Assembly (NCBI GenBank): GCA_009859145.1
Contig: VRVR01000009.1
Span: 251,500 to 315,499, forward strand
DNA from: Andalucia godoyi And28
Taxonomy: Eukaryota; Protista; Jakobida
Length of the DNA stretch: 64,000 nucleotides
Direction of reading: 5' to 3'
How positions within the stretch are numbered: position 1 is the first letter of the stretch; each line of letters opens with the position of its first letter. The notes under the pieces are model-generated. The model was not told where the DNA came from. It saw only the letters and a list, made by a program, of their open reading frames with translations, and did not search any database. The translations under genes and the position numbers were made by a program. Below are positions 48,014 through 64,000 of this stretch, piece after piece.

Positions 48014-48861
48014 CTTCTTCTTCTTCTTCTTCTTGTTGTTGTTGTTGTCGGAGTTGTTCTTTCAAGCTTTCTTTAGCACAAAACAAAAAACCTGTAAAAA
48101 CAAGAGGGAAGAACAGCAGGGAATATGTAAATCACGAGGGCTTGGCAAAATATTTTTTAAAAAAAACTATTAACAGTGTTCTCAGAGATAAAGATGTTTA
48201 AAAAAGCCAATCAAAATAAAATAACAATGATTATGATTATGAGTATAAAATGAACCCCAAAACCAAGACCAAGACCAAGACCAACAACAAGCAACAAGCA
48301 ACAAGCAACAAGCAACAAGCAAACAATCCGAGGGACGCTGCACAAAACGCATAGATGACAGGGAAGCGCACATGGGGCGGTGGTTGACACTTTGGACAGC
48401 TTTTCCGGGCGGCTGTCAGCAGTCAGCAGTCAGCAGCCAGCAGTCAGCATGTCCGTGAAGGGATTGATAGCAAATGACAGCAATTTGCAAGCATACAGCA
48501 GGAAAAGTTTCTTCTTTCACGCTGAGGTTTTTTTTTCCTCCGGTGTTTCTTGGCTGTGAGCCGTGCACCATATCCACAAAAAGCTCCAAGCACATTTTTT
48601 ACGACGCTGGACCGCTGGTGGATACCAGAACATGGAGCCAGAAAAGAAGCGACACTGGGTATCAGCTGTCATCCTCATCCACGAAGAGCCTAAGCATCAA
48701 CTGCTGTAGCTCACAGCTCCGTGTGCCGGATCTTTTGCCGCCGCTCTTCTGCTTTTTTTCACTTGCTCGTTCCGTTCTTTGGTCTTGTTATTATTATTTT
48801 TTTCGCTCTTTGTGATTCTCGGTTTTCGGGAGAACGAGATACAAAACAAATTTTCGGGGAG

Positions 48862-51051
48862 ATGGATTTTACGTTTGACCAGGATTTGTTCGCAAAGTTG
48901 CAAGAGACTGGTACGCATTTGAGCAGTGCCGGCGCGAGTCGAAAGCGCGAGCGACAGCAAGCAATCTCGGCCTCAGATTCAGATTCAGATTCAGGTTCAG
49001 GTTCAGGTTCCGATGCAGAAGATGCAGATTCAGGTTCTGAAAATGCAAGTGATGATGGTGTGGGCTCTGTGTTGTCAGATGACGCGGTAGATGAAGATGT
49101 CATCCTGGATGTTGTAGACTCTGACCATGAAGCGGACGGCGACGAAGAACCGATGTACAAGTTTGACACGTATGCCGATGCCGAGTCTGCGACCGCCAGT
49201 TCATTTTCTGATTTGCACATTTCAAAGATCCTTGTTCGCGGACTCTCTGCCATTGGAATTCACTCTCCCACGCCAGTGCAGGCAGCAGCTATTCCTCCGA
49301 TTCTGAAAGGAATGGATGTGTGCGCAAGCGCTGTCACTGGATCCGGAAAGACGCTCGCATTCCTCCTGCCGCTTCTGGATCGGCTGCTGCATTTGAAAAA
49401 GGACGCAGGATTTGGGTTCAACCAACCTGAATCGAGAATTTTGGTCCTGGTGCCTACGAGAGAGCTTGCTCTGCAGTGCAGTCAGGTGCTTGACAAGCTG
49501 TTCAGCCTTCCGCAGCTGACCAAGTTGGTGACACATTGTGTTCTTATTGGTGGACTGAGCTCTTCTGTCCAGACTGCTCAGCTTCGGCAGAAACCTGACA
49601 TTGTGATCGCGACCCCCGGACGCCTGCTGGACTTGCTGATGAATGCTGCGTCGATCTGCCTGGAAGAAACGATAGAGGTCCTCGTGCTTGACGAAGCCGA
49701 TCGATTGCTAGAAATGGGGTTCGAAGACGAATTGAAAGAAATTCTGTCCCGGTTGAAAGTGTCAGAGGGAAAGCGACAGACTGTCTTATTCTCTGCCACA
49801 ATGACTGAAAAGGTCTCGGATCTGATCCGGCTCTCTTTGAAAAAGCCTGTTCGAGTATCCGTTGATGGAAAATATGATGTTGCATCGGGTTTGTCGCAGG
49901 AGTTTGTGAAGATCCGCACAAGAATATCACTGAAAGTCCTGTCCGAACATCGAACGGGCACCTCACATTCGAACTCTGCTGAACGCATTTCGAAGGATGA
50001 AGATGGCGGTGACAGCGACGACAACGACGACGACGACAACAGCGACGACAACGACGACGAGCGTTTGCCCGAAGCTGCAGAAGAAGCAGATGCCAACGAC
50101 TTCACTTCCAAATCCAGGGCTGCAGATAACGTCAGAGATCGAAGCTTTGTCCCGTCTGCAGAAGACCTTGCCCGAGAAGGTGCCTTGTTGGCGCTCTTGA
50201 GGCGGACGTATAAATCCCGGGTGATCGTATTCTTCTCTCTCAAGAGGTCGATTGACCGCGTGTCTTGTCTGCTTTCGCATTTCGGCATCCAGAATGTTGT
50301 GTTGCACGGATCGTTGTCGCAAACGCAAAGAATGGCATCTCTTGCCGACTTTCAGGCAGGGAAGGCGGAGATTCTGCTTTGCACGGACGTTGCTGCTCGT
50401 GGAATTGACATTGCTTCTGTGAAAACTGTGATCAATTACGATCTTCCGTCCGCATTGGCATCCTACATACATCGTGTTGGGCGAACAGCTCGTGCCGGGA
50501 AAAAGGGATGTTCGGTTAGCCTGATAGGAGAAGCAGACCGACGACTTCTGCGGGACATTGTCAAATCTCAAAAGCAAACAAGTGTGTTGAAAAACCGTGT
50601 CGTTGCCCCCAACGTGCTTGCGCAGAATTTTTCGCGCATTCTCCGGGCTGGGTCTGCGATTTCCAGACGTTTGCAGGAGTTATCCGTCGAACGGCAAGTG
50701 GAGCGTACCGAAATGGAATTGAAAAAGGCGCAAAATTCTGTCACCTTTCACGACGAAATCATGAGTCGACCAAAGAAGACGTGGATTCAAAAGAATTCGC
50801 TCGTCCAGCAGGAACTCGAGAATCAAGGGGGTCGACACGGACCGAAGAAATCTGCCAAACAGATGGAACGGGAGAAGGAAATGAAATTTGTTCGTGTCGC
50901 TTCTCGATTTTCCAAGAGGACGCACAAGGACAGCCGGTTGAACGCAGAAGAGCTTCCAAAGAAGAACTCGGGCTCTCATTTTTCCAAAGGAAGTAGACGT
51001 AATGATTCGAGAGACAGTAAGCGAAGCAAGAGACCGTTTGCAAGCAAGTGA
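48862..51051 (+). CDS. DDX27: DEAD-box helicase Drs1/DDX27, 729 aa
   Basis: AVTGSGKT, PTRELA, TPGRL, DEADRLLEMGF, SATM, SQEFVKIR, HRVGRTARAG, EIMSRPKKTW. Confidence 0.9.
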   Translation: MDFTFDQDLFAKLQETGTHLSSAGASRKRERQQAISASDSDSDSGSGSGSDAEDADSGSENASDDGVGSVLSDDAVDEDVILDVVDSDHEADGDEEPMYKFDTYADAESATASSFSDLHISKILVRGLSAIGIHSPTPVQAAAIPPILKGMDVCASAVTGSGKTLAFLLPLLDRLLHLKKDAGFGFNQPESRILVLVPTRELALQCSQVLDKLFSLPQLTKLVTHCVLIGGLSSSVQTAQLRQKPDIVIATPGRLLDLLMNAASICLEETIEVLVLDEADRLLEMGFEDELKEILSRLKVSEGKRQTVLFSATMTEKVSDLIRLSLKKPVRVSVDGKYDVASGLSQEFVKIRTRISLKVLSEHRTGTSHSNSAERISKDEDGGDSDDNDDDDNSDDNDDERLPEAAEEADANDFTSKSRAADNVRDRSFVPSAEDLAREGALLALLRRTYKSRVIVFFSLKRSIDRVSCLLSHFGIQNVVLHGSLSQTQRMASLADFQAGKAEILLCTDVAARGIDIASVKTVINYDLPSALASYIHRVGRTARAGKKGCSVSLIGEADRRLLRDIVKSQKQTSVLKNRVVAPNVLAQNFSRILRAGSAISRRLQELSVERQVERTEMELKKAQNSVTFHDEIMSRPKKTWIQKNSLVQQELENQGGRHGPKKSAKQMEREKEMKFVRVASRFSKRTHKDSRLNAEELPKKNSGSHFSKGSRRNDSRDSKRSKRPFASK

Positions 51052-51393: not shown

Positions 51394-52803
51394 TTATCTA
51401 TGTTCAGTTTCGGTTGCCACAGGGGCCGGATTGGACACGTTTCTTACATCAGCAACAGCACGGCGAGCATCGTCCTCGTCGATGCCTCCATCAGCGTCGT
51501 CATCAGCGTCGTCAACGTCATCCATATCCTCGGACATATCCTCGGACATGGAATCGGGCCCTCCCATCATTTGCGCTTCCCGATGAGCTTGAGCTGCAGT
51601 TGACATCGCGGCAAGATGATTTTCGAACCCCTCGTGCAGCTGATCCAACTCCGTGCGAACGATCTGGAACTGAGAGATGAGAATTGACACTCGGTTGCGC
51701 AGCGACCGCATCATCGAATCTGAAATGATCGATCCGTCCTTCGCAATAGGAATTTGAATTTCTCCCTGTGGTGCTGACGAGGTATCCATGAGAAGTTCTT
51801 CTGCTGCAAGTGTTGTGGACGAGATTCCGTGCGGGTTATGCTTTGACGAGGTGCTGCGTGCTTCTCGTTTTGCTCTTGCTCGACGATTGTAAAACCACAC
51901 CTGGATTCGCCGGGAATCCATTCGCAAATCTGCCGATATCTGCGTAAGCTCCGTGGTAGTGGGATGCTGCTCTTGCAAAAAATATGCTTCCAAAATGATA
52001 GTCTCTTCGGTAGTAAAATTCCGTCGATCACGCTTTGGCTTTTTGGATGGACGGCCGTTCGAATGCGATTCTGCTGCAGCACCGTGGTCTCCCGATTCAT
52101 GAAGCCGAAAGTGCCTTGACGTGGTGGACACCGAGGGAGAGGAATGCGAATCGGATTCTGGAGATGCACTGGCCCAATTCTCATCTGTGTTGTGGGGTGG
52201 TGCCATTCGAGATGACGAACCGGTCGATGCACTTGCGACATTGTTGTGATCCGGTCGATGCAGTTCAGCACCCTCTTTCTTCACCTCGTGTCCACCAGAA
52301 AATCCGAGAGACGGCGATGTTGTGCTACGACCCGCCAAACCCGAAGCCGACTCCACCACCGAAGAGTCATTGTGCATCATCGAGTGCGCAGACGAGGGTT
52401 CCTTGGTCGTCACATCATCCGAATGTCGGGACTCTGGCGTTTGCTGTGATTGAGCCTCCCGATGAACAACAATGCCCACCTGCTCTGCACTGCTTCTACT
52501 GCTGTGTAGCGTCACTGCAGTGCCATTCCCCGATCCAGGGGCAGGCAGATCTCGATCTGAACCTGACCCGGAACCCGAACCCGAACCCGAACCCGAACCC
52601 GATTCTGAATCCGAATGCAAATGCAATTGTGAATGCGATGGCGAACGGGAATGTGAATGTATTGAGATGGAGGAAAGCCGAGAGTCCTGTTGCGCTGAAG
52701 AAGGATATATTCGGAAATCACCGGCAGTATCCAAAGCAGATCGTCCCTTTTCACGACTGAGATCCAGAGCCGCATTGGACTCACCTCCCACACTTGTATC
52801 CAT
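51394..52803 (-). CDS. Homeodomain protein (non-TALE) with a downstream coiled coil, 469 aa
   Basis: RRNFTTEETIILEAYF...HP....LTQIS.DLRM..RRIQVWFYNRRAR (about 51860-52040); amphipathic helix LRNRVSILISQFQIVRTELDQL. Confidence 0.88.
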   Translation of the reverse strand: MDTSVGGESNAALDLSREKGRSALDTAGDFRIYPSSAQQDSRLSSISIHSHSRSPSHSQLHLHSDSESGSGSGSGSGSGSGSDRDLPAPGSGNGTAVTLHSSRSSAEQVGIVVHREAQSQQTPESRHSDDVTTKEPSSAHSMMHNDSSVVESASGLAGRSTTSPSLGFSGGHEVKKEGAELHRPDHNNVASASTGSSSRMAPPHNTDENWASASPESDSHSSPSVSTTSRHFRLHESGDHGAAAESHSNGRPSKKPKRDRRNFTTEETIILEAYFLQEQHPTTTELTQISADLRMDSRRIQVWFYNRRARAKREARSTSSKHNPHGISSTTLAAEELLMDTSSAPQGEIQIPIAKDGSIISDSMMRSLRNRVSILISQFQIVRTELDQLHEGFENHLAAMSTAAQAHREAQMMGGPDSMSEDMSEDMDDVDDADDDADGGIDEDDARRAVADVRNVSNPAPVATETEHR

Positions 52804-53397
52804 TATCCACCAAAGATAAAAACTCTTTTCTCACCAATACAAAAGGAATAGAACAGAAATAAAACCATACAAACGTAAGGAAAAAACTATCAAAAAAAAA
52901 AAAAATGCTGGGAAAATAAAAATCAGAGCCAAAAAGATGCCGCCAAAAAAACGAGAAAAGGAAGACATCGGCTCTGAAAGCTCTTCTTATTGATGCTTGA
53001 TGCTTGCCGTAGTCTGTACATCGACTTTTTTTATAATGGAGTGTTTCTCTCGTGTTGTTGGACTCACGTTTGTGTGCCTGAAATAATCATCCTTTCGTGT
53101 TTTTTTAAGTTTCAGTGGTTTATCCTCACACACACACACACTCTCTCTCTCTCTCTTTTTCTCTTTTCTCACAGATCAAAGAAGGAGGACATTTTCGATT
53201 TTTAAAAAAAAGGTTTTGGTTAACGTGTACATTGCATATTGACTCATTACCATTCCTGATTGAGTCCTCGGCTGTTCGTGTTGTGGCGTTGGTCGTACAT
53301 CAAAGAAGAAGAAAACAAAACAAAACAAAAACAAGAAGAAGAGACCGGGAGGGAAAAAAAAAGAAAGAAGAAGAGCTGCATCTACTATTCTTGAGAA

Positions 53398-56300
53398 ATG
53401 GGCGCGGCGTCCTCTTGCTTACGCGGTAAGCGGACTGGACGGCTTGCTGTGAATTTCGAGAAGAGAATCAAGCAATTCATACGTGGTTTTCAGAGTCGTT
53501 ATCGCCGATCATGTCGAGTGCTTCGTCATCCTTATTTGGATGCAATTGTGCTGCGGCTTGCGTCGGCGGTGCATTTGGGTGTTCCTTTGAACTGGAGCGA
53601 TCCGATGGTCGATGACGCAGTGATTCAGGCATTTTCGACCGCATTGCGTTCGCTCGATGTTTGGATCGTGGAGAGCATGAGCATTTCCTTGGATTTGTCG
53701 TATTCTTCAGTCTCTGATACTGGGATTCGAAACCTGATCAGTATCAATCCGGCGTGTTTTTCGTCGATTGATTTGCGAGGAGTTAAGATATCAGACAAGT
53801 CATTGCTGGAAATCTCCTTGTATCTGCAGTCAGATAGTTGCAAAATGCGATCACTGCGACTGTCTCCTGCTTCCAGTTTCTATTTGGACAGCGACATTTC
53901 TTCCGATGTCTTCGATGGCAGACCCGCACACGTAATGTTCTCTTGCAAGGGATTGTCCGCATTCTTCTTCCATTTGAAGGATTTCAAATGTTTGCGAAGA
54001 CTCTCGTTACACAACTTTGTGCAGCCAGTGACATGGAATCCGTCAGTGACTGCGGCACTATGCGAAGGATTGATGTCTGCCCCGTGTTTCATTGAAGAAT
54101 TGGATCTATCCGAGAATCAGTTTTTGCACGAGCCGTTCGACGCCTCGATGAAGAACGTGGATTGCATCGTTGACAAGGGGTTGCAACGGAATTCATCCAT
54201 TCTTTTTTTGCGCATTGATGGAAATATTATCTCACGCTCGCAGGCTACTCTGCTTCGTCAAACCTTGGACCGAAATGGATGTTGTGCCGAAATAGTGTCG
54301 AATTGTGTTGCCAGCGCTCTTGCTCATTCTGGATACGAGGCCTTGTCTGCGTCACCAGTCTCTATGGCTGTGCCTGCCAAATCGATAGACAAGACAGCGA
54401 ACAAAGGCATTCAGCTTCAATCCCGAGAGCCGATGACTCCGCGCCCAGAAGCGTTGCCCAACCTGTCGCATGCCCCGTCCCTTCCCCCACTCCAAATTCC
54501 TGCTTCCACGCACTCCCCAGTTTCTGTCGTTACTTTCCCTTCCCCTGATATTGTGAGACTCCGTAGCAATACGAATTCAATCTCCTGCGCTATTTCACTT
54601 GGAGACGAATCAAAATCATCGACAGCCTTGTTTGTTGCAGACTTGAATTTTCGCTCTACAGATCGCGAATGCTTGTTTCTCATGGTGGATGGGCATGGAG
54701 GCTCTGTCGCAGCACGACTTTGTGCGAAATGCATACCTTCGTTCTTATCTTCGTACCTGGAAAATGCCGAATCCCGAGTTTCTCGTCGCAAACGGTGTCT
54801 AACGGACAATGAAATCCTGGAGTGTATGCGTCAGTGCTTCTTCTCTGCTCAATCTCACGCCTCCTACGAGAATGTACCGGATGGTTGCTCCTGTGTGCTG
54901 ACATACATTCGGGACGACAAGGTCTATGTTGCTTCTGCTGGTGATTCTCGCATAGTCACACCATCGTCGTCTGCAGCACACCGCACACATCCTCTGCGGT
55001 TAACCGTGGACCATCTTCCGATTTTGCCAGACGAGAAGAAACGAATTTTAGAGAAGGGAGGGTTTCTGTCCACAGATGGAAGGTTGAATGGTATCTTGGG
55101 GCTTTCGAGATCCATCGGCGACCTTTATCTGCAGCCGTATGTGACGTGCGAGCCGTCGCTGCGGGTTCACCGATTTGCTTCGCCGTCGTCTCCACTGTCT
55201 GCGCAACACAAGGCGTCGCTAATGATTGCTCCGCGATACGTGTGGGATTTGTTTGACGAAGAAAAACTTGTTGACTTCTTGATGACTTCCGGGCAGTCCG
55301 TCGAGGATGCAGTATCTGCAATTGCGCGAGAGACCTTCTCCAAGGACAAACGTCGAATTGCTTTCGGAGTCGTTGAAATCAGTTCTTGTTCATCTTTCAC
55401 AACTGCTGCAGAGGCAAATCTGTTTGTGGATGCAGTTTCAACAGGGGAACGATCGTCTGATACGACCGGTTCGTTCTTTTCATCCATTGTGCCGCGGATT
55501 GTTGGGAACGCCGCCGCTGCTGCTGAAGATGCTTCCTTGTCGGGTGTGTTGAAAACAGAAGGATTCCGTGTTTCCGATCCTCCATCCGGAAGTGTTGGCG
55601 CTGCGAACGGACCGGCGAGTTCAAGTGGAAATCATGAGTTCAATGTCGTGCGGCTTTTTGAAGCCACCGTGCTTGGGGACTTGGATGTTTTGGATTCACT
55701 GTTGCCAATGATCGTTGATGTTTCCCAGCTCATTGATTTCGAAGGGAGGTCGTTGTTGCACGTTGCGGCGTCGAATGGACGCTCTGCAGTCTTGGAGTAT
55801 CTCTTGCCAATGTTTTCCATTGATCGAATTAACCTTCCTGATCGAAACGGACGCACTGCGATGATGGATGCTATTGACTACGGACACGAAGGCTGCTTCC
55901 AGTTACTCGTTCAAAAAGGTGCGCAAGTCCCGCCCCTCGGCTTGGTGGAGGGGGGCATCCAAATGTGCCGTGCAGCTTCGGTGGGAGATTATCGGCTTTT
56001 GCACCGACTCCTATCAGTGTACAAGCTGGACGCCAATTCATGCGATTATGATCTGCGTACTCCATTGATGCTTGCATCCGCGGAGGGTCACATGGATTGC
56101 GTTCAATTGCTGCTGGAGCACGGAGCCGATGTTTGGGCTCGAGATCGATGGCACAACACTGCGTATCAGGAGGCGAGACGGACGGGACACCATGCCATCG
56201 CAGATCGATTGTTGTCGCTGCAAGACAAGTCTGTTTTTGAGTATCTGGACCATACTGTACCTGTTCGTACAGAGGATGTAGCGGTAACTGTTGTCTCTTG

Positions 56301-58320
56301 TGCTTCTGCGGATGTCCTCGACAACAGCGAAAGCCCGCAAACGAATCATGTGTCAGCGCCAGCGCCAGCGACTGCGTCAGTGAATGAGATGCAACGCCCT
56401 GTTGATGGTGCGCGATTCAAGCCGGAGTCAAGAAGTCGGTTCTTGAGGATGTGCAGCTCTTTTCTCTCAAACTGCTTTGACTGGAAGGCGGTGCCATCCC
56501 TCGGACCGCCGACTGCTGCAACGCCAGCCAGTTGTCCAGTTGACGACTTAAATGTTCAGATTGTGTATGGTGAATTTTGGCTTCCGCGCCAGGATGGGTT
56601 TTTGGAATGTTCTTCCGCGTATTTCATTTCGGAAGAGTGCAGAAGTGATCCAAGACTCTTGTTTTTCCGGGACCAGACACTGGCATATGCCTTTGAAATT
56701 TCTTGCGACACTCCTGGTCGCGTGTTTGCATCTCTTCGATCAGAGTTTCTGCATCCACTGTCTTCTCCGTCCACCACGCAAACGGATTTTCTTCGTAAGC
56801 ACCTCGCTATCCAGTGCGGTTTGGATACCTGCATTGGGGTTCCGTTTGTTTTTGGCTCCAATCAATGTGTGGCGGTTGCGGTGTTTTTTGGACGATATGT
56901 ACCGTCTGCTGCTGTTGATACACGCGGGTTGCACCAGCTGGCCACGGCACCCTGGTTTCGGTGCTCACAAGCGTCCTTGCTGCTTAGGTCTTGGCAATCC
57001 CTCGCGCATCATTTGTCGACAATATTGGTGTCTCTTGCGCAGATTGATTGTCAAGTCTCTTCGCCGTATTCATATGTCTCTTATCTGGTTTCGTTGGTAG
57101 ACCAGATCACCGATGTCCCCTTTGCTGATTTGCTGAAGGTCCTGTGTCATATGGGCGGTTTAGAGCCCTTCTATCAACTGCTGCGAAGCATGTCCTCCGA
57201 TGATCACAAAGCAGCGATGGCGTTTCTTTCTCTGGTGTGCTTGGCGCCTGTGTGCAGCATGCTCCCAGCCGAAGTGAAATCCACAATTCGAGAGCTGCTA
57301 TTCTATTTGCTGGCTGTTTCTCCGGTAATTCCCAAGAATCTCCAGACTTCAGAACCGGTCCTGGACATTGCTCGCAGATGTCTTCTTCAGTTATGTGGAG
57401 AGACTGTGCGAATTCCATATTCTCCTTCCTCCGGTTTTATCTCCCCCATTATTCGCGCATTGTCCGGTGTGGCGGCCGAGATTTTGGCGTTCCAAGTGGA
57501 AGAATCAAAGATCTTACGCGTGGCTCAGAAGTTTTCTGTGTCCTTCTCGTCTCCTTCTGATTTTTCCATTTCATCTTTCGATATATATACTATTCTAGGA
57601 GCGAAGCCGAGTGTTTCATCACCGTCGGGTGGGGGCGGTGGCGGTGGCGGTGGCAGACCACAGTTTTCAGCTGTCCGGAGTCGTTTTCCGCTTCCCATTG
57701 CGCCTCGAAATTCGTATTACTCATCGTATGACAGCGGGAGCATGTATTCGAACAAGAAGGCTTCAGCTTCGGACATGGAAATTGAAAACATCTTTGCCTT
57801 TTGTTCTGAATGCATCAAGAATTTCCGGAGCTTGTTGGGCAAAGAGGATATTCCCTCCTCTGTGCTGACTGTTGATTCGGTTTTGAAGCTGCATTCTTCG
57901 CTTGTGCATCTAGATGGTTCTGTTGAGAAGGGCCATTTCCGTACGGAGGCTGCCGTGGGATCCTTCATGTTCTTCAAGTCGTATCGGTGCTTCATGCCAG
58001 CAGAAGAGGTGTCGTATGGAATGTCCATTTATGAACGGGAACTGAATTCGCCTCAGTGGAAAACGTTTGATGATGAAGGAAAGCTGAATCCATTGGGCGT
58101 AATTCGAAAAGCGTATTATGCTTTTGCTGCGCTTGTATACTATATTCATCCGTTTGAAGATGGAAACGGCCGCGTTGCCCGCCTGCTATGCTCTTTGGTT
58201 CTGCGGATGTATGGCTGCAGCGTCGTACCCTTGTCAAGCGCAGACAAGTTGTTGTCATTCGCTGAATTTATTGACAAGATTGCGAACGCAGGAGGACCGT
58301 ATCTGAATCGATATTCGTAA
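53398..58320 (+). CDS. Multidomain protein: N-acylation/IQ-like, LRR, PP2C-like, ankyrin, GAF-like and Fic domains, 1640 aa
   Basis: MGAASSC; RNI-like LRRs (IEELDLSENQF, ILFLRIDGNII); DGHGG, AGDSR, LSRSIGD; ankyrins (GRSLLHVAASNG, DYDLRTPLMLASAEG); EFWLP...TPGRVF...CIGVPF; HPFEDGNGRVAR at 58147-58182. Confidence 0.9.
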   Translation: MGAASSCLRGKRTGRLAVNFEKRIKQFIRGFQSRYRRSCRVLRHPYLDAIVLRLASAVHLGVPLNWSDPMVDDAVIQAFSTALRSLDVWIVESMSISLDLSYSSVSDTGIRNLISINPACFSSIDLRGVKISDKSLLEISLYLQSDSCKMRSLRLSPASSFYLDSDISSDVFDGRPAHVMFSCKGLSAFFFHLKDFKCLRRLSLHNFVQPVTWNPSVTAALCEGLMSAPCFIEELDLSENQFLHEPFDASMKNVDCIVDKGLQRNSSILFLRIDGNIISRSQATLLRQTLDRNGCCAEIVSNCVASALAHSGYEALSASPVSMAVPAKSIDKTANKGIQLQSREPMTPRPEALPNLSHAPSLPPLQIPASTHSPVSVVTFPSPDIVRLRSNTNSISCAISLGDESKSSTALFVADLNFRSTDRECLFLMVDGHGGSVAARLCAKCIPSFLSSYLENAESRVSRRKRCLTDNEILECMRQCFFSAQSHASYENVPDGCSCVLTYIRDDKVYVASAGDSRIVTPSSSAAHRTHPLRLTVDHLPILPDEKKRILEKGGFLSTDGRLNGILGLSRSIGDLYLQPYVTCEPSLRVHRFASPSSPLSAQHKASLMIAPRYVWDLFDEEKLVDFLMTSGQSVEDAVSAIARETFSKDKRRIAFGVVEISSCSSFTTAAEANLFVDAVSTGERSSDTTGSFFSSIVPRIVGNAAAAAEDASLSGVLKTEGFRVSDPPSGSVGAANGPASSSGNHEFNVVRLFEATVLGDLDVLDSLLPMIVDVSQLIDFEGRSLLHVAASNGRSAVLEYLLPMFSIDRINLPDRNGRTAMMDAIDYGHEGCFQLLVQKGAQVPPLGLVEGGIQMCRAASVGDYRLLHRLLSVYKLDANSCDYDLRTPLMLASAEGHMDCVQLLLEHGADVWARDRWHNTAYQEARRTGHHAIADRLLSLQDKSVFEYLDHTVPVRTEDVAVTVVSCASADVLDNSESPQTNHVSAPAPATASVNEMQRPVDGARFKPESRSRFLRMCSSFLSNCFDWKAVPSLGPPTAATPASCPVDDLNVQIVYGEFWLPRQDGFLECSSAYFISEECRSDPRLLFFRDQTLAYAFEISCDTPGRVFASLRSEFLHPLSSPSTTQTDFLRKHLAIQCGLDTCIGVPFVFGSNQCVAVAVFFGRYVPSAAVDTRGLHQLATAPWFRCSQASLLLRSWQSLAHHLSTILVSLAQIDCQVSSPYSYVSYLVSLVDQITDVPFADLLKVLCHMGGLEPFYQLLRSMSSDDHKAAMAFLSLVCLAPVCSMLPAEVKSTIRELLFYLLAVSPVIPKNLQTSEPVLDIARRCLLQLCGETVRIPYSPSSGFISPIIRALSGVAAEILAFQVEESKILRVAQKFSVSFSSPSDFSISSFDIYTILGAKPSVSSPSGGGGGGGGGRPQFSAVRSRFPLPIAPRNSYYSSYDSGSMYSNKKASASDMEIENIFAFCSECIKNFRSLLGKEDIPSSVLTVDSVLKLHSSLVHLDGSVEKGHFRTEAAVGSFMFFKSYRCFMPAEEVSYGMSIYERELNSPQWKTFDDEGKLNPLGVIRKAYYAFAALVYYIHPFEDGNGRVARLLCSLVLRMYGCSVVPLSSADKLLSFAEFIDKIANAGGPYLNRYS

Positions 58321-58394
58321 TCCGTCAAGCAGTCCAAGACAAGCCGTGAGACGTCTCGACGCGCGATTCATTTCTCACGCATCGCGCAGCAGCA

Positions 58395-59813
58395 TCAAGG
58401 TGCTAAAATCCAGTAATTCAGTACAATATTACTACTTGACTTGCGCATCGTTTCCGTACAATGTGTTTCCAATTTTGAAATCATATGACGAACCCAGCAA
58501 TCGTATTGGTGTGCATCGGCCAGAATTTCGGCCGGTACCGAGAATGAAGTTTTTCGAGCGGTCAGCTTGTCGGAACCATGAATATAGATCGACGGGGTAG
58601 TTTGATATATTTCGAACCATCCAGACGGCGACGGCGGCGGCGGCGGAACGAGCGCATTTGGAGAGGTCAGCACCACAGGCGTGGAGTGAATCCACAAGTC
58701 AAAAATCAGATTTGCCACTTGCACCCAGCTAATGCAAATGCCATCCAGCTGCGCCAGAGGATTTGGAACCAGCAAAACACATGGAGTTTGATGGTGGAAT
58801 GGACGGGGCAATGCATCGGAGAACGTTCGAGATCGGCTGGTTTTCGCTTGGAAGTTAAACAGCAAGTCAGCACCGTCGCGCACGGAACACTCTGATACGT
58901 CCAGGTCGATGCTCCCGATGATCAGAACGCGTGAGCGAATCGCTGACGGCTCGATGTGGAATTGTTCGTATACAGCATCATAAGAATGAGATATCGACGA
59001 GTCGTGCAGCGATGGGGTACGCGGCTGTTCCTCCTGGCCGAATGTAGGCTGTTCCGCGACTGAGTACGCGACCGTTTCAGTGTACATGGCATCAAACAAC
59101 ACACCGTTGGTGCGAAGGAACGCGACCACTTTTTCTGCGTAATGAACAGACACCGAAAAAGGAGATACAAGTGCAATTTGGAAATGCTCAGCCAGTCGGT
59201 TCATGCCGTCCACAACACCCGGTCTGGGAAACGAAATCGCAACGTCTGGTTTGAAGGACAGCCGCCCGGCATCCACCAGCAGATTTTCCCAGTGCAAGAC
59301 AAGCAATGGCTCGCGGCGCATATGGAGTCTTGGAGAGAACACCAGCGGCAAGCAGACACGACGCGGCATACAAACTGCTGCAGAGGCTCCAACAGTCACT
59401 TTGGAAGCTGCCAAACTCGTTGGCCCAAACGGAGCGGAATTGGAGCGTTTTCGAGGTTCGGCTCGCGAGCCAGATAGCACCGTCGCTCCGCGATTCAGCC
59501 GCGAGATTTCCCGCTCTGCTCGTTCCTGGACTCGGCCGACAATTTCCTTCGGACGATCCAATGTCAGAGTTGGGAAGAACTGGCCGTACAAGCGAATGTA
59601 CTCGGACAATGGATGGTCCAGTCCTGCAGTCGCATCGGCGTCAGCTGCAGCGCCCGCATTCGCAGTGGCAACAGCACTGCTTGTAAAACCCGTGGATGGA
59701 ACAGCAGTCGCATTTTCAGGCTTTGCTAATCGAAGAAACTCGTCGTCTTTTGCCGCTCGGCTGAAGGACGACGATCGAGGGCGTCTGTTGCCCATGCCCA
59801 TGCTCATGCTCAT
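58395..59813 (-). CDS. Uncharacterised protein with a degenerate FCP1/SCP(NIF)-type HAD-like domain, about 472 aa
   Basis: PLLVLHWENLLV...PRPGVVDGMNRLAEHFQIALVS resembles NIF-domain LVLDLDETLV...RPG...L..L...FEIV.FT but lacks DxDxT. Start uncertain. Confidence 0.6.
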   Translation of the reverse strand: MSMSMGMGNRRPRSSSFSRAAKDDEFLRLAKPENATAVPSTGFTSSAVATANAGAAADADATAGLDHPLSEYIRLYGQFFPTLTLDRPKEIVGRVQERAEREISRLNRGATVLSGSRAEPRKRSNSAPFGPTSLAASKVTVGASAAVCMPRRVCLPLVFSPRLHMRREPLLVLHWENLLVDAGRLSFKPDVAISFPRPGVVDGMNRLAEHFQIALVSPFSVSVHYAEKVVAFLRTNGVLFDAMYTETVAYSVAEQPTFGQEEQPRTPSLHDSSISHSYDAVYEQFHIEPSAIRSRVLIIGSIDLDVSECSVRDGADLLFNFQAKTSRSRTFSDALPRPFHHQTPCVLLVPNPLAQLDGICISWVQVANLIFDLWIHSTPVVLTSPNALVPPPPPSPSGWFEIYQTTPSIYIHGSDKLTARKTSFSVPAEILADAHQYDCWVRHMISKLETHCTETMRKSSSNIVLNYWILAP

Positions 59814-59819
59814 GTTCAC

Positions 59820-62558: not shown

Positions 62559-63854
62559 CTATGTATCGATCGCGTCCGAGGCTTCTCCAACGACTGCCAG
62601 TGCCTCCGTGCCAGCATCTTCAGACCCAAGAGTACTTGCACAGGATTGATGATGCTGCTGTTGTTGTTGATGTTGCTGCTGTTGTTGATGTTGCTGCTGC
62701 TGCTGCTGCTCCTCCAGTGTTCGCTGCAGTTTTTGAACAGTCTGCTCCAAGCGATCCAGCCTTCTTCCGACATTCTTTTCCAATGCACTTACGCGGTCGT
62801 CGATGCACGAACCGATTTTGCGTTCCAGCGAATCGAACTGAATGCGAAATGCAGACAAGACGCCTTCGAAGATTGGATGGTCGGCAATGGAACCTGTCCC
62901 TCTCCCAGGACCAGGGAGGAAGGAGGAGGAAGATTGCGAAGGTGTTGTTGACGATGACGACGACGATGCGGCTGGGCGATTGCCAAAGAGGCCAGCAAGC
63001 AAACCAGGAAGCGCGGCGGCCATACCCGCACCGGCTGTTGGGCTTGCAGGCATCTTTCCCTGCATAGACTCGATCAAAGGGTTCTTGGGGAGGATTGGAT
63101 CATCTAGTGTACCAGCGGCTGCAAAACAAATGATAATAATAATAATAATAATAATAATAAGCACGCAAAAATCATTGAAAGTCATTTTTGTGCAACGTGA
63201 ACTAAAGAGCGAGGCCAAAGAATAAGAAGAAGAAGGTGGGGACATACTGTCCATCGAGGATGGGTTACAGACAGGGCATTTCACATTCCTGACACTTCCT
63301 TCAAGAGAAATACGGACGACCTTCAACGCAGACTTGTCCACAAGTCCCATGAATCGGACAACGATACGCACAACATTTCGTGGTTGGTCCGGAAATACCG
63401 ATTGGCACAGCATGCTCGCAGGGTGGGAAGCAGAAGGATTCGGAACCCCCCGGATCGATCCCTGATAGAGATCGGTGCCCAGTACGTCGGACGTTGCAGA
63501 ATAGCAGACGTTTGAAACGTATATCTCCACAGACCGGGCATTCGATACGATTGAAATCCCGCGAAGATCGACCGCCGCAACGTGAGAGTCGCTCTTACTG
63601 CTGGCCGAAGGAGACAAGCCAGGTGCCAATAACACAATGGCAGGCCGTGGAGGAGCCGCATTCACAATTCCATCTGCATCGGTATCGGCACCAGGATTCA
63701 GTGGTGGCGGTAGAGGTGGGGTAAGAGTGACAAAATCATTGTCCGCAGCTAATTCCGTGTTCTGCGAGACTGCGGCGAGGCGAATTGCAGTCTCGGGAAT
63801 TCCTGTCCAAGAAGAAAACACGGACCAATAGCAGGATGCAGCACTGGCGGTCAT
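62559..63854 (-). CDS. PAAT/C10orf88 (DUF4506)-like protein; probable intron 63119-63247, about 388 aa spliced
   Basis: ISIVSNARSVEIY...Y.G..RG resembles the C10orf88 N-terminal motif as I recall it; C-terminal coiled coil. Intron GTATGT...TTGCAG is 129 nt with no stop codon. Confidence 0.55.
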   Translation of the reverse strand: MTASAASCYWSVFSSWTGIPETAIRLAAVSQNTELAADNDFVTLTPPLPPPLNPGADTDADGIVNAAPPRPAIVLLAPGLSPSASSKSDSHVAAVDLRGISIVSNARSVEIYVSNVCYSATSDVLGTDLYQGSIRGVPNPSASHPASMLCQSVFPDQPRNVVRIVVRFMGLVDKSALKVVRISLEGSVRNVKCPVCNPSSMDSMSPPSSSYSLASLFSSRCTKMTFNDFCVLIIIIIIIIIICFAAAGTLDDPILPKNPLIESMQGKMPASPTAGAGMAAALPGLLAGLFGNRPAASSSSSSTTPSQSSSSFLPGPGRGTGSIADHPIFEGVLSAFRIQFDSLERKIGSCIDDRVSALEKNVGRRLDRLEQTVQKLQRTLEEQQQQQQHQQQQQHQQQQQHHQSCASTLGSEDAGTEALAVVGEASDAIDT

Positions 63855-63941
63855 GGATCGTACACGCAATCGGCTGCTGAGATCTCGGGGCGGGTGGGCT
63901 GGAAACAGTATAAGTGTGCAAAAAGTCGGCACCCTTTGCAG

Positions 63942-63943
<2 letters not shown>

Positions 63944-63981
<38 letters not shown>
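63944..63981 (+). repeat. (CA)19 microsatellite
   Basis: Read directly. Confidence 0.95.
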
Positions 63982-63985
<4 letters not shown>

Positions 63986-64000
63986 AACGAACGAACAAAC

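Follow-up and report, generated by a model that had tools for sequence, protein, structure and literature searches.

The subject of this article is a single gene of the jakobid Andalucia godoyi, in a 64-kb stretch of nuclear DNA that is called, as a whole, the window below. The gene encodes a protein of 1640 residues that we read, at a probability of about 0.6, as a lipid-anchored, cytosolic, multidomain signaling enzyme whose output would be nucleotidyl transfer by a C-terminal Fic domain, most likely AMPylation. From front to back it is predicted to carry an acylated N terminus, leucine-rich repeats (LRRs), a PP2C-like domain, ankyrin repeats, a GAF-like domain, an all-helical domain and the Fic domain (Table 1). 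Sequence comparison indicates that the rear part, ankyrin–GAF–helical–Fic, is a recurrent and uncharacterized eukaryotic family whose N-terminal modules vary, and that the LRR–PP2C front end is an addition specific to the Andalucia lineage. An initial annotation, drawn up from the DNA letters, had not recognized the architecture from any characterized protein. That judgment holds for the full five-part form, which appears unique to the Andalucia lineage. It needs qualifying for the C-terminal two-thirds, which belong to a deposited, if uncharacterized, eukaryotic family.

The Fic domain and its helical companion

Pfam Fic (PF02661) matches residues 1490 to 1602, with 40.0 bits when the whole protein is scanned and 44.5 bits when the C-terminal 200 residues are, against a cut-off of 24. 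The catalytic motif, HPFEDGNGRVAR, spans H1584 to R1595 (window 58147–58182) and has the form HxFx(D/E)GN(G/K)RxxR; it is complete, as the initial annotation had claimed, and both of the upstream Fic helices named there can be located, LTVDSVLKLH at 1490 to 1499 and GHFR at 1512 to 1515. The AlphaFold2 (AF2) model of the helical and Fic domains together has a predicted local distance difference test score (pLDDT) of 77 and a predicted template-modeling score (pTM) of 0.78, with pLDDT at 91 to 96 around the catalytic motif. The catalytic His lies 57 residues from the C terminus. The domain would most likely transfer AMP to a target protein.

Ahead of the Fic domain is a stretch (residues ~1195–1405) that no Pfam model matches. 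Its AF2 helices have pLDDT values of about 80 to 90 and pack with Fic. Three motifs mark it, SMSSDDH (1264–1270; window 57187–57207), AVSP (1306–1309) and PYSPSSGFISP (1340–1350), and seven of its residues, S1267, H1270, S1308, P1309, P1340, S1349 and G1401, are invariant in the family alignment described below. We regard it as a candidate for an undescribed domain, one that in the sequences at hand always accompanies this Fic subtype. The Gly/Ser-rich linker that joins it to Fic is an insertion relative to other family members, and AF2 gives it pLDDT below 50 (model residues 184–229).

A recurrent eukaryotic family

The family was revealed by an exhaustive HMMER search with residues 960 to 1640, which returned 172 proteins. 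Word-index searches, with the full protein or with residues 951 to 1640, were swamped by ankyrins, and a profile of the helical and Fic region found only two family members in that index. The 90%-identity cluster to which the 1640-residue protein belongs is represented by a 51-residue ENA fragment (P0007), and a full-protein word-index search misses the protein itself; similar clusters represented by fragments could hide other long proteins from searches of this kind.

The best Fic matches are long proteins with Fic at the extreme C terminus. Pfam scans of these relatives give Ank–Fic or Ank–GAF–Fic for most, with Kelch–Ank–GAF–Fic in Diphylleia, Kelch–Fic in Rhodelphis and one MMETSP transcript, and LRR_6–Ank–Fic in P0008, the closest full-length relative. 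Proteins with ankyrin, GAF, helical domain and Fic in that order come from Diphylleia, Plasmodiophora, Aphanomyces, Pythium, Corallochytrium and metagenomes. The species that can be named for the family are Diphylleia rotans, Plasmodiophora brassicae, Aphanomyces stellatus, Pythium oligandrum, Rhodelphis marinus, Corallochytrium limacisporum and Syssomonas multiformis (a partial member), to which metagenomes can be added. The family is spread over Discoba, CRuMs, Rhizaria, stramenopiles, Rhodelphis and unicellular holozoans, and its members carry in UniProt only the label ‘Fido domain-containing protein’.

Alignment A1 brings together the helical and Fic region of 13 members, which are collinear. 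Identity of the relatives to the A. godoyi protein over this region is 24 to 33%. Residues that never vary are concentrated in three places: the Fic motif, the flap region (VGS...YR.F.P.EE) and the motifs of the helical domain, which across the family read SM.SEDH, (T/A)VSP and PYFGPG..SP; Fic ends about 50 to 75 residues after the catalytic His. The A. godoyi protein has the family pattern of ankyrin, GAF, helical domain and C-terminal Fic, with SMSSDDH and AVSP in place. Among the motif-bearing matches, 59 of 60 have HPFxDGNG(R/K)xxR; a catalytic motif kept whole by practically every member argues for active enzymes.

Four of the relatives serve as examples: P. brassicae A0A3P3YFL5, A. stellatus A0A485LE94, P. 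oligandrum A0A8K1FID7 and D. rotans EP00002_P032324. Like the A. godoyi protein, they have ankyrin repeats, GAF and the helical domain with its three motifs, and at the C terminus a Fic domain with HPFxDGNGRxxR. The acylated N terminus predicted for the A. godoyi protein, its ribonuclease inhibitor (RI)-type LRRs and its PP2C-like domain are found in none of the deposited Ank–GAF–Fic proteins, some of which have Kelch propellers instead. The A. godoyi protein also differs from these relatives in the long Gly-rich insertion before Fic and in having PYSPSS where they have PYFGPG.

P0008 is a 1485-residue collinear ORF (open reading frame) at L083 271–4728, from the Logan assembly of SRR15116022, and its genes are as tightly spaced as those of the window. 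It has in common with the A. godoyi protein an MG N terminus, RI-type LRRs, ankyrins, the helical domain and Fic. The genes downstream of P0008 are unrelated to those in the window, and orthology is not proven by synteny. Two shorter proteins on Logan contigs, P0016 and P0021 (~500 residues), begin with a hydrophobic segment, to which only the helical domain and Fic are added. By analogy, this topology recalls that of FICD, the human Fic protein, in which a transmembrane (TM) anchor and tetratricopeptide repeats (TPR) precede Fic, and it may bear on the origin of FICD.

Prokaryotes, sampled through GTDB at one genome per species, lack the combination of helical domain and Fic. Matches there cover the Fic core only, at 28 to 29% identity where the match is 135 to 142 residues long (query positions 253–394), and the best genomic ones are in Bacteroidales and Fibrobacter. 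In the literature we searched, no paper combined Fic with GAF and ankyrin, and the A. godoyi genome paper mentions neither Fic, PP2C nor ankyrin (PMC7050145). The accounts searched describe the Fic proteins of eukaryotes as metazoan FICD plus a few fungal, Dictyostelium/amoebal and plant groups attributed to horizontal transfer from bacteria (PMC2686095, PMC4454073, PMC8097203).

Ankyrin repeats and a GAF-like domain

Two further modules belong to the family core. Pfam ankyrin families match residues 754 to 940 above their gathering scores, with E values down to 7e-26, and PDB matches to this block are DARPins and ankyrin; it is 31% identical to the ankyrins of P0008. The presence of ankyrin repeats had been noticed in the initial annotation, which counted about four. 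Reading the sequence we count about six.

The GAF-like segment has no direct Pfam match of its own, and its assignment is supported by transitive homology through relatives and bacterial GAF domains. With phmmer, residues ~1056 to 1165 match more than 80 of the 150 proteins listed, with E values down to 2e-13. In both of the bacterial histidine kinases/cyclases that we examined, P0037 and P0047, the matched stretch falls inside Pfam GAF/GAF_2 domains, and the match to the Pfam-verified GAF of P0037 is itself at E 2e-13. The segment and the GAF_2 region of the Diphylleia relative P0010 are homologous (E 4e-12), homology of the GAF region extends through the family (alignment A3), the equivalent region matches GAF_2/GAF_NLP in seven of ten aligned relatives, and the family profile weakly matches the GAF structures of EGL1 and PDE2A. 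The GAF-like call of the initial annotation (residues ~1050–1170) is supported on this evidence. Its further proposal, AMPylation under small-molecule control, survives in part. Gating by a sensor is a reasonable reading because GAF adjoins Fic in relatives from several eukaryotic supergroups; control by a small molecule is no more than a possibility. The GAF here is of the GAF_2/GAF_NLP/bHLH-MYC_N flavor, and domains of that type often mediate protein contacts.

The front end: a predicted acylation signal, leucine-rich repeats and a PP2C-like domain

The protein had been called membrane-anchored, and this is only partly sustained. In its 1640 residues there is no convincing TM helix (the maximum Kyte–Doolittle value is 1.98, inside a modeled globular helix). 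We therefore rejected a TM anchor: hydrophobicity is nowhere strong along the chain, and it is highest in a helix that is confidently modeled as globular. What can be said for the membrane comes from the N terminus, MGAASSC, which fits the short N-myristoylation pattern MG-x-x-x-(S/T). P0008 begins MGCLPSKN, and an MG...C N terminus is common to the two proteins. On these motifs, the protein is probably lipid-anchored by N-myristoylation and possibly by palmitoylation.

Two long helices (residues 11–60) precede the LRR region. Pfam LRR_6 stays below threshold there, at 14 bits against a cut-off of 23.4, and reaches 30 bits in P0008. The AF2 model of the region, built on alignment A2, which includes P0008, has a pLDDT of 60.6 and a pTM of 0.59 and consists of seven regularly spaced β-strand/helix units; Foldseek matches it to the LRRs of ribonuclease inhibitor, NOD2 and NLRP proteins with probability 1.0 and E values of about 1e-4. 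We assign residues ~62 to 310 to LRRs of the RI/NLR type with moderate confidence. The LRRs proposed in the initial annotation (residues ~70–300) accordingly find their backing in structure prediction and not in Pfam.

The PP2C fold, placed by the initial annotation at residues ~400 to 660, is confirmed. Pfam PP2C matches residues 418 to 633 with 113.6 bits (E 1.6e-32), above its gathering score, and matches to PP2C structures in the PDB reach E 2.8e-16. The active site is another matter. We read it from three independent alignments: to PDB PP2Cs, to an Anaeramoeba LRR–PP2C protein, and by hand to three canonical homologues. Each of them includes the CDG(I/V)W motif, and two include RxxMED. 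DGHGG is retained (431–435, with D431), as is D650. RxxMED is replaced by E404...S407-S408-T409, in which Arg has become E404 and the ED pair S408-T409, and CDG(I/V)W is replaced by P612-R613-Y614-V-W, in which the motif Asp has become R613. We take the metal-coordinating residues of PP2Cα to be D38, D60, D239 and D282, and its phosphate-binding residue to be R33. By that reckoning the domain has lost two of its four acidic positions for metal binding, together with the Arg that binds phosphate, and for this reason it is probably a pseudophosphatase, catalytically dead. In P0008 the corresponding region has degenerated past recognition, and Pfam, BLAST and phmmer detect no PP2C there.

Likeness to known systems

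Among solved structures, human FICD is the closest to the enzyme end. Human FICD (HYPE) and C. elegans FIC-1, the characterized Fic AMPylases of eukaryotes, have the same form of Fic motif as the A. godoyi protein. The family profile scores FICD (E 6.5e-22) above everything else in the PDB, with the bacterial Fic structures well behind. The top PDB matches of the helical and Fic model in Foldseek are human FICD, C. elegans FIC-1 and Bacteroides BT_2513, all with probability 1.0, and these alignments run over about 400 columns, yet the global TM-score is only 0.30 to 0.37. As in FICD, a helical domain precedes Fic and is modeled as one unit with it.

There are also differences. FICD has its TM anchor and TPR, whereas the A. 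godoyi protein has no TPR match in Pfam. FICD resides in the lumen of the endoplasmic reticulum (ER), whereas the myristoylation motif, RI-type LRRs and ankyrins speak for a cytosolic-type context. The flap region of the A. godoyi protein carries a family-specific insertion, VGSFMFFKSYRCF, unlike that of FICD; only about 50 residues follow the Fic motif, again unlike FICD; and relative to FICD the GAF, ankyrin, PP2C and LRR modules are additions. In auto-inhibited Fic proteins the Glu of an inhibitory helix blocks the site of the ATP γ-phosphate. In FICD that helix has the motif (T/S)V(A/G)IEN, with Glu234 (PMC8097203), and we found no conserved counterpart of this Glu in the A. godoyi family, although an element alike in structure and divergent in sequence may exist. 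One candidate, DMEIEN (1459–1464), was considered as a FICD-like inhibitory motif and rejected: its column varies in A1 and D stands in place of S/T. The helix that contains it is confidently modeled and in the profile alignment falls opposite FICD ~266 to 280, downstream of the Glu234 helix.

The initial annotation had likened the protein to fungal adenylyl cyclase Cyr1. Cyr1 combines LRRs, a PP2C-like domain and a class III cyclase; metazoan PHLPP combines PH, LRR and PP2C. The order of LRR followed by PP2C-like is indeed common to Cyr1, PHLPP, Anaeramoeba P0001 and P0004 and the A. godoyi protein, and the Anaeramoeba LRR–PP2C protein matches ours in the PP2C region (pairwise E 5e-21). The LRRs seem to differ in kind, being predicted as RI/NLR-type in the A. 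godoyi protein and of the typical LRR_1/LRR_4/LRR_8 sort in P0001 and P0004; Cyr1 and PHLPP would be expected to carry the typical type too. Pfam finds no Guanylate_cyc, RA or PH match in the A. godoyi protein, and its PP2C domain has lost the DG(L/I)WD Asp and the RxxMED ED that the Anaeramoeba and Russula homologues keep. With RI/NLR-type LRRs, no cyclase domain and lost PP2C catalytic residues, a Cyr1-like design is an analogy only.

Bacterial Fic proteins match the Fic core and never the helical domain; BT_2513 (PDB 3CUC), a Bacteroides class II Fic protein, is similar in the core at a single-sequence E of 6e-8. The Legionella effector AnkX, like the A. godoyi protein, combines Fic with ankyrin repeats. 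In AnkX, however, Fic is N-terminal and transfers phosphocholine, whereas in A. godoyi it is C-terminal (PMC4454073, PMC2686095).

The gene and its neighbors

The deposited gene model on VRVR01000009.1 (GCA_009859145.1), a 424-kb contig, has an identical 1640-residue product, which bears out the single uninterrupted frame that the initial annotation described. An in-frame stop at 53392, 6 nt upstream of the ORF start, fixes the N terminus at MGAASSC. The A. godoyi genome is compact (~20 Mb), most of its genes are intronless, and its gene models were checked against RNA-seq (PMC7050145). The window has this character throughout: long intronless ORFs, tightly packed and on alternating strands, with ordinary eukaryotic products that include ATG2, LKR/SDH, HSP90, DEAD-box helicases, AspRS, a SnRK/CIPK-like kinase, a homeobox protein and a mitochondrial-type (DnaK-like) Hsp70. 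In codon usage and GC content the Fic-protein ORF, taken whole or segment by segment, is like its neighbors. Given these neighbors and this composition, the ORF is a native eukaryotic gene. A recent bacterial origin or contamination was considered and rejected on the eukaryotic context, the matching composition and the lack of prokaryotic homologues of the helical–Fic unit. Scans of the 64-kb window for tRNA genes and against Rfam gave no matches.

Table 1. Positions of the Fic-protein gene, its predicted protein features and nearby frames (window coordinates; residues refer to the 1640-residue protein)
Feature	Window position	Strand	Residues	Remarks
Fic-protein ORF	53398–58320	+	1640 in all	ATG start; stop codon 58318–58320; uninterrupted
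N-terminal MGAASSCLRGKR	53398–53433	+		N-myristoylation consensus (G2, S6); possible palmitoyl-Cys7; basic patch
~7 ribonuclease-inhibitor-type LRRs	53581–54327	+	~62–310	AF2 and Foldseek
PP2C-like domain	54583–55392	+	~396–665	Pfam PP2C
Ankyrin block	55645–56232	+	~750–945	Pfam Ank_2, Ank, Ank_4, Ank_3, Ank_5
GAF-like domain	56530–56967	+	~1045–1190	transitive homology
Family-specific all-helical domain	56980–57612	+	~1195–1405	AF2 helices; alignment A1
Disordered Gly/Ser-rich linker	57613–57753	+	1406–1452	includes G9 run
Fic (Fido) domain	57760–58317	+	~1455–1640	C-terminal; Pfam Fic
Homeobox gene	51394–52803	−		divergent from Fic-protein gene
Unannotated 474-residue ORF	58395–59819	−		convergent with Fic-protein gene
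Repeat-rich ORF	62559–63998	−		reaches window edge; weak TFIIA-like match only

The homeobox and Fic-protein genes have a 594-bp upstream region in common (52804–53397), which holds an A/G-rich tract. On the other side only 74 bp (58321–58394) separate the stop codon from the convergent 474-residue ORF, and with so little room the 3′ untranslated regions of the two probably overlap. The frame at the window edge is rich in simple repeats: (TG)n encodes a CVCVCV run, and poly-Ile and a long Q/H tract occur as well; its upstream part may be untranslated microsatellite sequence. Dipeptide runs of the (SG)n/(SD)n kind occur in the homeobox protein and in a DEAD-box helicase (48721–51051, +), and the Fic protein has its G9 run at residues 1411 to 1419. 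These runs in two neighbors and in the Fic protein suggest that short-repeat expansion is frequent in the coding regions of this genome.

How the protein might work, and what else it might be

The working model is as follows. The protein would be myristoylated, possibly palmitoylated as well, and so placed on the cytosolic face of a membrane. There LRRs, ankyrins and the PP2C-like pseudophosphatase would bind partners or substrates, the ankyrins being the likely dock; the PP2C-like domain would probably bind (phospho)proteins or act as a scaffold, without catalysis of its own. GAF would be the likely receiver of a regulatory signal, whether from a ligand or from a partner protein. The helical domain would pack on Fic roughly where the TPR-linker sits in FICD, and Fic would move AMP from ATP to a Ser, Thr or Tyr hydroxyl of the recruited target. 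The functional core would be ankyrin–GAF–helical–Fic, to the front of which the Andalucia lineage has added the predicted acylation signal, the RI/NLR-type LRRs and the PP2C-like domain. What the sequences show is a single ORF, the identity of its domains, an intact Fic motif, a PP2C site that has degenerated, and how the family is distributed; we infer lipid anchoring, AMP as the group transferred, regulation through GAF and the binding roles of LRR, ankyrin and PP2C.

Several points weigh against this model. The prediction of lipidation has just a short motif behind it, the LRR model is of moderate confidence, the GAF segment itself fails Pfam and nothing in the analysis indicates a ligand. 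PP2C enzymes with atypical sites can keep activity, and Fic domains can transfer UMP, GMP, phosphocholine or phosphate in place of AMP. Finally, neither alignment A1 nor the profile alignment to FICD has a conserved (S/T)xxxE(G/N) inhibitory motif. Since none was found, the family may be regulated differently from auto-inhibited Fic proteins, with the neighboring GAF and helical domains as the first candidates to consider. That SM.SEDH of the helical domain supplies an inhibitory Glu in trans is speculation.

Might the Fic domain work in reverse, or on both reactions as FICD does, or transfer another of these groups? De-AMPylation by FICD needs the inhibitory-helix Glu, and neither an equivalent conserved Glu nor the motif around it is detectable in the family. 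As for the choice of group, the motif is of the canonical AMPylase form, with Gly before Asn, a position at which AnkX departs from the canon. These points make the idea unlikely, even though FICD is the closest solved relative and is bifunctional, AMPylase and de-AMPylase in one (PMC8097203), and Fic chemistry is versatile (PMC4454073). A quite different proposal is that the protein is an immune or conflict device, in which variable N-terminal repeats sense a pathogen or non-self and release Fic as a toxic effector on the cell’s own proteins. The structural kinship of the LRRs to those of RI, NOD2 and NLRP proteins would suit it, as would the exchange of sensor-like N-terminal modules between lineages (LRR, Kelch, extra ankyrins) while GAF–helical–Fic is conserved, and Fic/Doc domains are common toxin modules in bacteria. 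Pfam finds no NACHT, NB-ARC or other switch NTPase and no death-fold domain, however; the ankyrin–GAF–Fic core is low-copy across very distant eukaryotes, which is more like housekeeping signaling; and the one window examined has no sign of paralogue expansion. We think an immune role quite improbable.

The degenerate PP2C site raises the thought that Fic has gone the same way, leaving a pure scaffold of two pseudoenzymes. Against this, every residue of the Fic motif is kept, purifying selection is evident in A1 across relatives at only 24 to 33% identity, and the Fic fold is modeled confidently, so we give the scaffold very little credence. Least credible of all is an artefact of assembly or annotation, a gene fusion, a bacterial contaminant or a recent transfer from bacteria. 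It is true that the long protein has low-complexity linkers, and that horizontal transfer has been invoked to explain eukaryotic Fic domains (PMC4454073). But the frame runs stop-free for 4.9 kb between homeobox, DEAD-box helicase, Hsp70 and AspRS genes on a 424-kb contig, in a genome whose genes are mostly intronless and whose models were checked by RNA-seq (PMC7050145). An independent assembly (SRR15116022) has the collinear P0008 with its MG N terminus, LRR, Ank, helical domain and Fic; composition matches that of the neighbors; and the helical–Fic unit is absent from prokaryotes. A lipid-anchored cytosolic signaling enzyme with a Fic output remains our preferred reading.

What the family may mean

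Eukaryotic AMPylation is understood almost wholly through FICD in the ER lumen, together with the pseudokinase SelO. A bolder idea, which we offer tentatively and consider doubtful as a whole, is that Ank–GAF–helical–Fic is an ancient eukaryotic module for GAF-gated AMPylation in the cytosol and the first sensor-controlled Fic. Metazoan FICD would then be a derived offshoot relocated to the ER, not an independent acquisition from bacteria, and the Andalucia protein would be its most elaborate version, in which the module is coupled to a membrane and to a pseudophosphatase that binds phosphoproteins. Short of that, what we have is a cytosolic-type Fic family, distinct from FICD, with what looks like a built-in GAF sensor and a helical domain that no Pfam model describes. 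In the A. godoyi protein, a probable PP2C pseudophosphatase seems to have been recruited into a Fic signaling device. If the enzymes are active, AMPylation would be a wider signaling modification among eukaryotes than has been assumed, and the family would help both to trace the origin of FICD and to test whether a ligand-binding domain, in place of an inhibitory Glu, can control a Fic enzyme.

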